This document shows positions 663 to 52,790 of a stretch of 64,000 bases of DNA, in pieces. The stretch is from Octopus sinensis. Lineage: Eukaryota. The notes under the pieces are model-generated. The model was not told the DNA's origin, made no database searches, and saw only the letters and a program-made list of their open reading frames with translations. The position numbers and the translations under genes were made by a program. The stretch spans positions 48,360,001-48,424,000 of the forward strand of contig NC_043015.1 in NCBI RefSeq assembly GCF_006345805.1, in the 5' to 3' direction. The first letter of the stretch is position 1; each line of letters opens with the position of its first letter.

Positions 663-878
663 GCTGAACCTTACACAGTAGCATCACTACAAAACCATCA
701 CAGTAGCAGGAAATTTAGTGCGCATCAGAAGTAAAGGATGCAACCATTAATAGGAGATCAATATGTCTAGCAGTGGTATCAATCAATAGATTTAGAACCA
801 ATATCATCTGTTAGAACAAAAAGATTCAAAATTTACATTTCTTGATGTTGACATTGTTTTTTTTTTCAATAATTTCAG

Positions 879-1079
879 GAACATCACGAGGGTGTTGGCG
901 GTGCCATCAAACATGCAGTACATGACATGATTTATGGTCATGACCATCACCATGGAGGCCACCATGGACATCATGTTCACTATGACCATCACGATCATCA
1001 TGGTCATCATGGTCATCATGGTCATCATTATGACCCTCATCATCATCATCACGATTACCATCACCATGACCACTGCTAA
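879..1079 (+). CDS. Terminal coding exon of an unidentified histidine-rich protein: EHHEGVGGAIKHAVHDMIYGHDHHHGGHHGHHVHYDHHDHHGHHGHHGHHYDPHHHHHDYHHHDHC*
   Basis: A T10 tract and TTTCAG acceptor (AG 877-878) precede 66 open codons ending in TAA 1077-1079. 32 of 66 codons are His, using both CAT and CAC; Gly uses GGT/GGA/GGC. AATAAA lies 83 nt after the stop. Upstream exons were not found in the window. Confidence 0.7.
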   Translation, partial: EHHEGVGGAIKHAVHDMIYGHDHHHGGHHGHHVHYDHHDHHGHHGHHGHHYDPHHHHHDYHHHDHC

Positions 1080-1161
1080 AACACTTCTTCAGTGTAACAT
1101 TGAGGATGACAAAATTAAACCAATAATTGTTTCCCATATAACATTGTTATAATGACTTTAT

Positions 1162-1167
1162 AATAAA
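1162..1167 (+). terminator. Candidate polyadenylation signal for the His-rich gene
   Basis: Canonical AATAAA 83 nt downstream of TAA 1079. Confidence 0.5.
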
Positions 1168-5066: not shown

Positions 5067-5139
5067 GGTTTCGTGGTGTAGTGATTATCACGTCTGCTTT
5101 ACACGCAGAAGACCGCGAGTTCGAACCTCGCCGGAACCT
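5067..5139 (+). tRNA. tRNA-Val-TAC: tRNA-Val(TAC), variant or possible pseudogene
   Basis: Full cloverleaf: acceptor GGTTTCG/CGGAACC, D stem GTGT/TCAC, anticodon stem TCTGC/GCAGA with loop TTTACAC, T stem GCGAG/CTCGC with loop TTCGAAC. Pol III terminator TTTTT at 5146-5150. Deviations: A at position 19 and T at discriminator 73. Confidence 0.9.
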
Positions 5140-6064: not shown

Positions 6065-6632
6065 ATGGTTTCTGATTACAAATATCTTGGGTCATACATA
6101 TCATCATCTGGAAAAGATTTTCTAACTAGAAAGGCTATGGCCTGGTCAGCCTGTAATGACATGCATAAGATCTGGTCATCAAATCTAAGTAGAGACTTCA
6201 AACTTGAAATCTTCAAAGCCACAGTCAAACCAATTCTACTATATGGCTCAGAAACCTGGATGTTATCAAAGAAGCTTGAGAGGCGGTTGGATGGAACCTA
6301 CACTCACCTCCTTATGAGAGCTCAAAATCTCTCATGGAAGCATCATCCAACCAAAATGCAAATATATGCGAAACTACCACCTGTGTCATCTCTTGTGAAA
6401 GGTAGGAGAGTCCAGTTTGCTGGACATTGTTGTAGAGCTGAAAACGAGGCAATGTCTACTCTTCTCCTCTGGAAGCCATCTACTCGCAATACCAGAGGGC
6501 ACACACTCTCCTACCCTGATGTAATCTCCAGGGATACAGGCATCCAGCAACAGGACCTCCGTAATGCTATGATGGACCGCGAAGTCTGGTAAATTCCATT
6601 GTCTCAACCACGGTCGAACAATGATGATGTTG
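6065..6632 (+). mobile_element. 5'-truncated non-LTR retrotransposon (RTE-like RT C-terminus) with a 10-bp TSD
   Basis: ORF contains YKYLGSYI, FKATVKPILLYGSETW and RRVQFAGHC, with an (ATG)n tail at 6621-6629. The direct repeat ACAGTGACAT lies at 6055-6064 and 6633-6642. Confidence 0.9.
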
Positions 6633-14717: not shown

Positions 14718-16473
14718 TGACCAGTAAAATTAATAACTAATTAGCCAATTCACCGAAGAATTGCTAATGTAATCAAGTGGATCATATAGAGAAAGGAAGT
14801 CTAAACAGTCAGCTTGGTCGATACACAAGTAATGTGTCGTCGATAAACGGCCTTACTGGAGCATCATAACAACAAGATCAATAGTAGTCGTAAATACTTT
14901 GCTAGGTCAGAGACCTGCAAGGAAACCCATGCTACTACCATCAGGTGAGAAGTGAAAACATGATACCACTACCACTTAGTTTAACTTAGTTACTTTAGAA
15001 AGAAAGAACAGCTGGAATGTTTTTTATAAACTATATATATATAAAAGAGGAAGGTTTTTTAAAGTAATTTTCAAGAAGCCCTTACATCATTCAATTTTTA
15101 GCAACAATGCACCACCAGCACCAACATTCACAACTTAGTTCCAATACATTCTGCAGAGAAATCACAGCATCATAAAAATTTACTAGATGCATTTATAATA
15201 ATAATAATAATAATAATCATAGTAATAACAATAATAGTAATTATAATAAAGCTAACACATACACCAATATCAATGGTAACTAATAAATTCAGCGATAACT
15301 GGGGAAATGGTATTATGGCTATTTCCCCATAGTAAAGAATAATCCAACAGGAACCCCTATCTTTGTGTCCAACCAGTGCTGCAATGAGATAGCTACTGCA
15401 AAGCCCACTGATTAAAAATAGAAACTTTAGTCCTCACACTTGTTCCTCTACTCAACTTCATTAACAAAAGAAAACAATTCTTGGCTAATATTTTAATTCC
15501 TTTTAAAGTTTCTCTTTTGTCAAAGATATTGACATTTGCACAGTTTTCAATCAACAACAATAATAGTAATAAAAATATTCTTCTTCTTAGGTTTCAATGC
15601 AAATGAGGAAAATTAAAAGCAAAAAAAAAAAAAAAGAACCAAGAATAACCTATGGAAGACAGATGATCCGACTAAAATAATTACCTATTTCTAATTAAGA
15701 GAAAAATGATTCTGCCTTCCTATATATCATGTGTGTGCGTGTATATATATATATATATACATACATATACACACACAGACACTCACCATATATATGTATG
15801 CACACACACCATACACACACATATATATATACATACACGCACACAACATATATATTAAATTTTGCCATCTCTTGAAATAGATGTTCCAAGCAGCAAAGAA
15901 CTCTATTTCTAGGGAATAAAGAAAAGTCGAAGGAATAATAATAATGAAATGAAACCAAGTACCTTAAAAGAGTCAGAATTTTTTTTACATATTTAACGAC
16001 ATTTTTGAAACTTAGCAGAAGAATAAAAAACAATCGCAACCTAAGATTTAGCATAGTTCTCCTGTATTTTGATCAAAATTAATAAAATATTGAATTATGA
16101 TAATAAAAGAATCCTTTAATCTACTAAATAGTAGGATTATTGTTAAATGATAAACATGGATCTACAATCAGCAGGTATTTCTTTAAGAAGAAGTAGGGAA
16201 TAATCTGACAATAATAATAATAACAGCATTGGATACAATGCAATTTAAGCTGGAAGAGAAAAATACCAGCAACATACATCAAAAGAAAAGGAGAGAAAAA
16301 TAAAAGAAAACCAAACAGGGTTTGAATGCTAAACTGAAACATTTTTTTAAAAGGGTGAGCTAAGACACAAAAAAAAATATAAGTTTTTCCATTGCCTAAA
16401 TAGTATAAATTATTCACATATATATATATATACACACACACACAGAGGTGTATGTGTGTGTAGGTATGTGTAT

Positions 16474-16871: not shown

Positions 16872-16929
16872 AAGTAGTAGTAATAGTAGTAGAGTAGTTG
16901 TAGTTGTAGTAGTAGTAGTAGTAGTAGTA
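16872..16929. repeat. Imperfect (TAG)n microsatellite in the proximal KPNA 3' UTR
   Basis: Direct reading; about 100 nt downstream of the stop codon. Confidence 0.9.
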
Positions 16930-17026: not shown

Positions 17027-17122
17027 TCAAAACTTGAAACCTTCAGAGGGGATTTGAGCATTGGGATCAAATTGATAACTCTGTTCTGCAGCTTGAGGCA
17101 CCAACTGAGTATCTTCTTCAAT
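17027..17122 (-). CDS. KPNA3: Importin alpha-3/4 exon 14 (last): IEEDTQLVPQAAEQSYQFDPNAQIPSEGFKF*
   Basis: Acceptor TTTCACAG, phase 0, TGA at 17029-17027. Matches the recalled KPNA3/4 C-terminus (..YNFDP...F.F). Confidence 0.95.
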   Translation of the reverse strand: MEEDTQLVPQAAEQSYQFDPNAQIPSEGFKF

Positions 17123-26160: not shown

Positions 26161-26525
26161 AGCTTGCTAACCATCCACATGGTTCTGGGTTCAGTCCCAC
26201 TGCGTGGCATCTTGGGCAAGCGTCTTCTGCTATAGCCTCAGGACAACCAAAGCCTTGTGAGTGGATTTGGTTGACGGAAACTGAAAGAAGCCTGTCGTAT
26301 ATATGTGTGTATATATATGTATGTGTGTGTATATGTTTGTCCTTCTAGCATTGCTTGACAACTGATGCTGGTGTGTTTATGTCCCCATCACTTAGCAGTT
26401 CGGCAAAAGAGACCGATCGAATAAGTACTGGGCTTACAAAGAATAAGTCCCGGGGCCGATTTGCTCGGCTAAAGGCGGTGCTCCAGCATGGCCGCAGTCA
26501 AATGACTGAAACAAGTAATAGAGTA
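26161..26525 (+). mobile_element. Family A SINE, slightly 5'-truncated, 50 bp from the exon 9 acceptor
   Basis: Core, microsatellite and tail as in the other copies. Confidence 0.9.
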
Positions 26526-26649
26526 ATAATTTATTTCCGAAGTAAAAAGTAATTTTGTACGAAAGAAGTAGACTGAAATAAACTTTACCCTTTAGCATTC
26601 AGATTATCCTATCAAATGTAATGCTTATTTATCCACATTGCTCTCAATT

Positions 26650-51451: not shown

Positions 51452-51880
51452 ATAATAATAATAATGAAATTGTGTATAGTGCTCATGTACAATACATAGA
51501 ATTATGTACAAAAGCCAGGAAAGTTAACGGTGTAGGAGTCATGATATACATGTGTATGGAGGGGGGGTATATCAGGTGTAGTGTTGGCAAATCTCAGGAA
51601 GCATGGAAGTTTTAAAGGATGCAATGTCTTGGCAACAAACAACTGATGCAGGTAGTTTGTTCCATACTTCAGCAACTCTGAGTGTGAAAAAAATGTTTCC
51701 AAAAGTCATGGGAGCTGTGCTGTTTTCTGACTTTGTAGGCATACCCATGTGTGTTAGACACATGGAGCTCAAAAAGGTGCTCAAGGTGGTTGTTGGTGCA
51801 GTGGTTAATAATTTTGTGGGTGTTTACTAAGTCAGTTGCCAGATGTTGGAGCTTCAATGTAGCTATGCCCAGGGAATCTA
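51452..51880 (-). mobile_element. CR1-like LINE 3' end
   Basis: LGIATLKLQHLATDLVNTHKIIN...THGYAYKVRKQHSSHDFWKHFF(fs)TLRVAEVWNKLPASVV..FKTSM; (TTA)n tail. Confidence 0.85.
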
Positions 51881-51894
51881 TGCAATAAACACTG

Positions 51895-52790
51895 AAAATG
51901 TGCAGAAAACAGGTTCCATCAAATGCCAGGGGGAAGAACTAGAAGTAGTTGATAGCTTCCATTACCTAGGAGACCAAGACAGTAGCAGGGGTGGTTGCTC
52001 TGAGAGTGTAGCTGCTAGAATAAGAATAGCTAGGGCAAAGTTCAGAGAGCTCCTACCTCTGCAGGTAACAAAGGGTCTCTTGCTCAGAGTGAAAAGTAGA
52101 TTGTATGACGCATGTGTGCAAACAGCCATGCTAGACGGCAGTGAAACATGGACAGTAACTGCTGAGGACATGCGCAAGCTTGCAAGAAATAAAGCTAGTA
52201 TGCTCCACTGGATGTGTAATGTCAGTGTGCATACACGACAGTGTAAGCGCACTGAGAAAAAAGTTGGACGTAAGAAGCATCAGATGTGGTGTGCAAGAGA
52301 GACGACTGCACTGGTATGGTTATGTGTTGCATATGGATGAGGACAGTAGTGTGAAAAAGTGTCACACCCTAGCAGTGGAGGAAACCTGTGGAAGAGGCAG
52401 ACCTAGGAAGACCTGGGATGAGGTGGTGAAGCACAACCTTCAAACATTGGGCCTCACGGAGGCAATGATGAGCAACGAGACTTTTGGAGATATGCTGTGC
52501 TTGAGAAGACCCAGCAATGCCAGTGTAGCATAACCAGTCGATTTAAGAGCACCCTTCAATCATTGGGCAATAAACTGTGCTTGAGAAGACCTGTTGAGTC
52601 AAGTGAAATCATTGTCGTGGCCGATGCCAGTGCCGCCTAACTGAATCCCATGCCGTTTGCACATAAAATGCACCATTCGAGCATGGTCGTTGCCAGTGTC
52701 TCCTGACTGGTTCCCATGCCAATGGCACGTAAAAAGCACCATTCGAACATGGTCACTGCCAGTGCTACCTGACTGGCTCCCATGATCTGC
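51895..52790 (+). mobile_element. RTE-clade LINE 3' portion (RT C-terminus and 3' UTR), frameshifted
   Basis: EVVDSFHYLGD..RIRIARAKFREL..RLYDACVQTAMLDGSETW..(fs)RRLHWYGYVLHM..GRGRPRKTWDEVV, followed by GTGGCACGTAAAAAGCACC subrepeats. Confidence 0.92.

Follow-up and report, generated by a model that had tools for sequence, protein, structure and literature searches.

The window analyzed here, a 64,000-nt stretch of the Octopus sinensis genome, carries close to its left end a plus-strand open frame of 66 codons (879–1076) that reads EHHEGVGGAIKHAVHDMIYGHDHHHGGHHGHHVHYDHHDHHGHHGHHGHHYDPHHHHHDYHHHDHC (translation of 870–1080). His accounts for 32 of the 66 residues (48.5%) and for 28 of the 46 in the distal part. 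A first-pass annotation had taken this frame for a hidden terminal exon encoding a putative metal-binding polypeptide, on the strength of these counts and of a splice acceptor, a stop and an AATAAA around it. All of them were reproduced by reading and translating the DNA, and the His-rich open frame is confirmed as a real sequence feature. An in-frame TAA lies at 870–872, the AG of the candidate acceptor at 877–878 and the frame-ending TAA at 1077–1079; the codons in between include 24 CAT, 8 CAC, 6 GGT, 2 GGC and 2 GGA. The features at the locus are as follows.

634–662: ETS core CCGGAAGT (634–641) and NRF1 palindrome GCGCATGCGC (653–662), 12 nt apart, within a patch spanning ~300–700
731–736, plus strand: possible splice donor GAA/GTAAAG, which together with AG 878 would delimit a 148-nt intron whose junction falls outside the His frame
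848–878, plus strand: candidate 3′ splice region, with branch-like TTGAC (848–852), T10 (857–866), TAA (870–872) and CAG ending at 878
879–938, plus strand: leader of 20 codons, EHHEGVGGAIKHAVHDMIYG (translation), with four CAY codons in phase with the array
927–1079, plus strand: the sole ATG-initiated ORF in the His frame, 50 aa, MIYGHDHHH... (ORF scan)
939–1076, plus strand: triplet array of 46 codons, 28 of them His, a mosaic of CAY, GGN, GAY and TAY (TRF and codon list)
804–1152: other open frames over the tract (ORF scan), namely 934–1152 on the plus strand (72 aa, I/T/M-rich) and, on the minus strand, 804–1073 (89 aa, M/V-rich) and 907–1137 (76 aa, D/H/G-rich)
1077–1079, plus strand: TAA stop of the His frame (sequence reading, translation)
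1162–1167, plus strand: AATAAA, 83 nt past the stop, inside an AT-rich TTATAATAACA-type repeat (1147–1235)

Openness is not specific to the His frame, as four of the six frames run through the tract without a stop. Just ahead of the 50-aa ORF, a 5-codon ORF starts at ATG 913 and ends in a TGA (928–930) that overlaps ATG 927 (ATGA).

Neighborhood of the tract

To the right of the tract, an importin-alpha3-type gene (KPNA3/4-like) with at least 12 recognizable exons runs on the minus strand from 41109 down to 17030. Its C-terminal exon (17128–17030) reads ...PSEGFKF, and its stop lies at 17027–17029, ~15.9 kb from the tract; the convergent orientation with KPNA3 that the first-pass annotation had assigned to the His-rich frame is correct. 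The exons were located by alignment to a probe importin-alpha sequence that served this purpose only. An (AGT)19 array (16873–16929) stands just beyond the importin stop.

Pfam, run on plus-strand open stretches from the 1.2–14.7 kb interval that were 50 aa or longer, with a few low-complexity ones omitted, returned only an RT-tail domain, and no recognizable plus-strand gene separates the tract from the importin gene. A 175-aa ORF at 6065–6592 (plus strand) gives a weak match to DUF6451 that stays under the gathering score (E = 1.6e-5). It resembles the tail end of a reverse-transcriptase ORF of retrotransposon type, and comparable fragments occur at 51843–52533. A tRNA-Val (anticodon TAC) lies at 5067–5139 on the plus strand, scoring 63 bits in Rfam and also called by ARAGORN; it may be either a working gene or a copy related to a SINE. 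Closer to the tract, 1608–2365 holds a direct duplication whose 215-nt copies (1608–1822 and 2010–2224) are 96% identical and 402 nt apart; with its internal 102- and 92-nt tandem repeats, it looks like an uncharacterized repeat element.

The 878 nt to the left of the frame have a different character. The patch at ~300–700 has a GC content of 0.44–0.52 and a CpG observed/expected ratio of up to 1.2, and its NRF1 palindrome GCGCATGCGC is the only match in the window even when one mismatch is allowed (0.10 expected). The patch is probably a promoter of the housekeeping type, and it may conceivably be linked to the His tract. On the minus strand, frameshifted ORF pieces at 1–332 and possibly at 690–730 (...GDHVIPPYIFPQGQ / RINATGYIEVLEMVVKP / QKWMSDNLYDHITPNSWSPNS) may represent the C-terminus of a Tc1/mariner-type transposase; Pfam and a protein search gave no match for the transposase reading of 1–332. 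Enumeration of ATG-to-donor exons in phase 0 within 1–878 yielded none that was convincing and nothing resembling a signal peptide.

The minus strand of the tract itself could be the coding one. Its ATG-initiated ORF of 76 codons (907–1137) reads ...GHGDGNRDDDDEGHNDDHDDHDDHDD... and would encode an Asp/His/Gly-rich tail; otherwise the tract might belong to a very long importin 3′ UTR. We hold such minus-strand explanations to be extremely improbable. The faint Pfam hits of the ORF (NOA36, Zip) reflect composition only, with none near threshold, an exact-product look-up found no such gene on record, no AATAAA is visible just downstream of the ORF stop, and an importin transcript reaching the tract would have to extend 15.9 kb past its stop.

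Repeat structure of the tract

TRF reports overlapping arrays over 963–1072 with periods of 3, 6, 9, 12 and 21 and with 0% indels, that is, tandem units with periods in multiples of three, as a triplet-repeat-derived array has them. The 9-bp unit is present in 7.3 copies at a 78% match (TRF). The codon list displays recurring GAC-CAT-CAC and CAC-CAT-GGA units as well as a perfect (CATCATGGT)x3 at 996–1022, which points to recent slippage. Because the tract is a repeat, its His richness is not a product of chance. The first-pass annotation had also argued against a plain (CAT)n microsatellite; this is right insofar as the tract differs from plain (CAT)n, but it is still a minisatellite-like array of 9-, 12- and 21-bp units with a perfect threefold CATCATGGT.

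The codons that interrupt the His runs have a relation at the level of DNA. Read on the opposite strand, the His-Gly-His unit CATGGTCATG gives exactly the His-Asp-His unit CATGACCATG, the adjacent arms 982–1002 and 1005–1025 are 81% complementary, and inverted arms (964–994/995–1025) also occur in the array. The Gly and Asp "codons" are therefore explicable without recourse to a protein. A hairpin was considered as a significant property of the tract and rejected, with a DNA fold z score of −1.19 against dinucleotide shuffles.

The open frame covers the same bases as the array: one TAA lies 9 nt ahead of the first CAT and another one codon past the last CAC. Such coextension is expected from a non-coding triplet array in AT-rich DNA and equally from an exon encoding a His tail. 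Nor can frame-preserving indels, the check proposed in the first-pass annotation, discriminate coding from non-coding sequence, since every slippage event in an array of triplets leaves the phase intact.

No paralogue of the tract was found elsewhere in the 64 kb, and the tract is unique in the window. Other triplet arrays occur in clearly non-coding DNA, with (ATA)18 at 15195 and (AGT)19 at 16873. In addition, heads of the abundant octopus SINE, composed of (CAT)4–9 followed by TGTTTAACGTCCGTTTTCCATGCTGGCATGGGTTGGACG, are located at 1559, 26644, 59326 and 62897; short CAT arrays, as these heads show, are frequent in this genome. Assignment of the tract itself as a SINE (CAT)n head was rejected, as the SINE body TGTTTAACGTCCG is present on neither flank.

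Splicing, polyadenylation and codon-level signals

If the frame is a real terminal exon, the last intron of a plus-strand gene, with earlier exons upstream of the window, would end at AG 877–878. The 66 residues would then form a disordered His/Gly/Asp-rich C-terminal tail, and the transcript would end via ATTAAA at 1114 or AATAAA at 1162. We regard this as a serious possibility, if one that we lean against.

The acceptor is its main asset. AG 877–878 sits 6 nt after the frame opens, in phase 0 and in a CAG/G context, and with no AG intervening between it and the branch-like TTGAC and T10; it is a functional-looking 3′ splice site. A PWM built from 11 importin acceptors of the same window scores it at 5.6 bits, a value reached or exceeded by 145 of the 7380 AGs (2%). 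The real importin acceptors range from −3.1 to 17.7 bits with a median of 13 (leave-one-out), which places the candidate inside their range and below their median. Open stretches of at least 66 codons number 206 in the window, and only three others, which look non-coding, have an acceptor as good in their first 12 nt. The frequency of a well-placed acceptor given a long open stretch is thus ~1.5%, and its presence corresponds roughly to a likelihood ratio of ~10 in favor of an exon.

The 3′ end offers less. A stop followed by polyadenylation signals within 90 nt is what a terminal exon would display, and ATTAAA at 1114 also lies downstream of the stop of the His frame. However, AATAAA 1162 is embedded in the AT-rich repeat. 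That repeat (1147–1235, TTATAATAACA-type) is partly self-complementary and full of TTATAATAA. With four AATAAA and one ATTAAA within 1070–1600 and 112 AATAAA on the plus strand as a whole, this strand-wide abundance and the makeup of the local repeat mean that AATAAA 1162 probably adds almost nothing. The trio as a whole, meaning a stretch of 66 or more open codons together with an acceptor and an AATAAA no more than 100 nt away, recurs once in the window, at 26349–26552 (plus strand); there, 67 open codons come with an acceptor of 10.5 bits and, inside the 100-nt limit, an AATAAA. This second instance is SINE-derived, antisense to an importin intron and obviously non-coding, a chance look-alike that serves as a useful false-positive control. 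From its recurrence, chance produces the full trio about once in 64 kb. Most gene-like signals of the tract are not beyond chance, and the acceptor alone is unusual.

The same acceptor could instead define exon 2 of a small two-exon transcript driven from the NRF1/ETS patch, either a non-coding RNA or a message for the 50-residue MIYGHDHHH... peptide from ATG 927. Such a transcript would start at ~660–700, have a non-coding exon 1 ending at 730 and a 148-nt intron, and continue in exon 2 from 879 to ~1185; ribosomes would arrive at ATG 927 either through leaky scanning or by reinitiating once the 5-codon ORF from ATG 913 had been translated. The patch is CpG-enriched and holds the window's only exact NRF1 palindrome 12 nt from an ETS core, and patch, donor 731 (top 3%), acceptor 878 (top 2%) and AATAAA 1162 are correctly ordered and oriented within 550 nt. 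Nevertheless, we find this arrangement quite unlikely. Donor 731 scores 5.8 bits, which is in the top 3% of GTs and yet below all nine real importin donors (6.4–12.2). The 730/879 junction lies outside the His frame and leaves the leader untranslated, so that its excess of G at first positions would go unexplained, and two ATGs precede ATG 927 within exon 2. Moreover, the putative promoter may face in either direction, and a housekeeping-type promoter would be an odd one for a His-rich peptide.

Codon-level statistics bear on whether the tract has been shaped as codons, as the terminal-exon reading would have it. Counted as changes from CAT, 21 codons are unchanged and 12, 9 and 4 carry single, double and triple changes, respectively, where independent positions would give 15.2, 20.7, 8.9 and 1.1. 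This clustering of changes within codons has P = 0.0012, or 0.006 after the perfect 9-mers are collapsed. Codons for Gln, Asn, Arg and Leu, each one step from CAT, are absent from the His frame. Purines occupy the third position in none of 37 codons of two-fold boxes and in two of eight codons of four-fold boxes (Fisher P = 0.028); the tract is in this sense a codon-wise mosaic of CAY, GGN, GAY and TAY in which third-position variation is wholly synonymous within codon boxes.

In the leader, 11 of 20 first positions are G (P = 0.011 uncorrected). Scored by a codon-usage log-odds trained on 484 importin codons, the leader reaches +1.5, higher than in any of the other five frames. This is far under the 8.6 ± 3.5 (mean) of in-frame importin windows, the window's real exons, and 10.7% of stop-free non-coding 60-mers score as high. 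The leader, which had been described as non-repetitive and on that account as an argument against a plain (CAT)n, is a weaker witness than claimed: four of its codons are CAY in phase with the array, and its +1.5 compares with 8.6 for importin.

The codon-clustering, purine and leader-G results lean toward coding, each of them weak or confounded. The confounding comes from the amplification of whole units and from the fact that the Gly and Asp units are reverse complements of each other; no P value from these codon-level tests would survive strict correction.

Coding tail or triplet array, and comparison with known systems

The 66-residue peptide has no match at E ≤ 10 among 5.8 billion proteins, a collection from which Octopus is seemingly absent, and none in an exhaustive phmmer search against 1.84 billion representatives, where HMMER down-weights biased sequence; it also matched no Pfam family and no PDB chain. 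Exact-product look-ups found no record of the ORFs of 50, 72, 76, 87 and 89 aa over or near the tract, nor of a 104-aa neighbor, the 175-aa RT-tail ORF and a 178-aa ORF from an importin exon. When the importin exon of the window was itself used as a query, it retrieved nothing but exon-sized ORFs from other animals, none above 88% identity. With the best match of this exon at 88% and no ORF of the window on record, the collections seem to lack Octopus, and given this and the down-weighting of biased sequence by HMMER, the absence of homologues carries little weight. Degenerate and exact patterns of the leader were absent from JGI metagenome contigs.

A literature search on octopus His-rich proteins and on the peptide strings gave nothing relevant beyond a report on beak proteins. 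According to that report, the histidine-rich beak proteins of squid occur only in decapodiforms and were not found in O. bimaculoides (PMC9068888). Membership in this family, with which the first-pass annotation had compared the tract, is left unsupported both by the lack of similarity and by the family's reported absence from O. bimaculoides (PMC9068888). No homology of the DgHBP type was detected among the 5.8 billion proteins or the 1.84 billion representatives, a result whose sensitivity is limited by the biased composition.

The reading we prefer, at a probability of about 0.5, is that the tract is an orphan, cryptically simple triplet array that does not code for protein and of which the His ORF is a by-product. 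Such an array would have grown by replication slippage and by local inverted duplication of CATG-rich units, e.g., CATCATGGT and CATGACCAT. As CAY, GGN and GAY triplets hold no stops in that phase, an open His frame would follow as a by-product, AT-rich flanks would close it within a few codons on either side, and the AT/T-rich DNA of these flanks would supply an acceptor-like AG and an AATAAA by chance.

Several lines favor this non-coding array. The TRF periods, the 0% indels, the perfect 9-mers, the four open frames and the coextension of frame and array all suit it, as do the reverse complementarity of the His-Gly-His and His-Asp-His units, the recurrence of the trio at 26349–26552 and the non-coding triplet arrays nearby. 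The scattered (CAT)n SINE heads and a leader whose codon usage falls in the upper tail of non-coding DNA add to these, together with the failure to find a convincing upstream exon in the window, a paralogue or a homologue. The tract has a repeat structure, it is open in several frames, its AATAAA is at chance level and it has no detected homologue; that it is unspliced and untranslated is what we infer. Against the non-coding array stand an acceptor in the top 2%, changes that cluster by codon rather than resembling a decayed (CAT)n, the absence of Gln, Asn, Arg and Leu codons, the lack of an attached SINE body, and an H/G/D/Y composition of the kind seen in metal-binding tails.

In a repeat-rich genome of 2–3 Gb, genuine His-rich coding tracts are probably no more frequent than long and complex CAY arrays outside coding sequence. 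The starting prior for coding is low for this reason, and the acceptor (likelihood ratio ~10) and the soft codon signals raise it. To the credit of an exon can also be counted the uniqueness of the tract in the window and its distinctness from a SINE head. Conversely, every frame-based argument for the exon fits a non-coding triplet array equally well, no homologue was found among the 5.8 billion proteins and 1.84 billion representatives (with Octopus seemingly absent), and the 878 nt upstream, rather than coding sequence, hold a CpG patch of promoter-like character and what may be a transposon relic.

With these points set against each other, we keep as a tentative second choice a lineage-specific octopus exon that is translated and whose ~48% His tail would bind Zn, Ni or Cu or serve in metal cross-linking; it would have been born from slippage of the triplet array and would still be expanding by it. 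Judged by its composition, such a tail, if translated, would be expected to chelate Zn, Ni or Cu via a disordered imidazole cluster, Asp and the terminal Cys. Were the exon real, it would represent an unannotated, taxonomically restricted His-rich protein in a lineage where the known His-rich beak proteins are reported missing, and octopods would have a His-rich protein unrelated to those of decapodiform beaks. It would, in addition, illustrate how a triplet array can give rise to coding sequence, which is useful and involves no new principle. If the exon is not real, as under the non-coding array that we prefer, genome scans should take the tract as a warning: triplet arrays rich in CAY give rise to striking "metal-binding" ORFs, to which an AG and an AATAAA in AT-rich DNA add little.

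Known His-rich proteins provide one set of comparisons. Helicobacter Hpn and similar small His-rich peptides for metal storage, the primate histatins and the Nereis jaw protein Nvjp-1 comprise ~45–50% His interrupted by Gly, Asp, Glu and Tyr, and an H/G/D/Y composition is typical of known metal-binding His-rich tails. The tract resembles Hpn, the histatins and Nvjp-1 in composition, and a Cys near the end is a further point in common with Hpn; these proteins come from unrelated lineages and protein searches revealed no homology to them. The likeness is compositional only, and any CAY-rich array would show the same. The DgHBPs of squid are closer in that they, too, are from a cephalopod, are rich in His and Gly and contain Tyr, but the squid HBPs form a cluster of ten genes, whereas the tract has no tandem paralogues in 64 kb. 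From its sequence, the tract would belong at most to the compositional class of Hpn, histatin, Nvjp-1 and squid HBP, with no family membership supported.

The second set of comparisons is with repeats. Like cryptically simple trinucleotide microsatellite or minisatellite arrays, among which the (CAT)n heads of octopus SINEs are counted, the tract has a triplet periodicity without indels, perfect and recent unit copies, several open frames and AT-rich repeat DNA on its flanks. It differs from the SINE heads, which have 4–9 units, in being much longer and more complex and in lacking the SINE body TGTTTAACGTCCG, and its variant triplets are whole-codon types, not single-base changes at random. 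Either way, the tract is a fresh instance of a known thing, a triplet array or a His-rich low-complexity tail.
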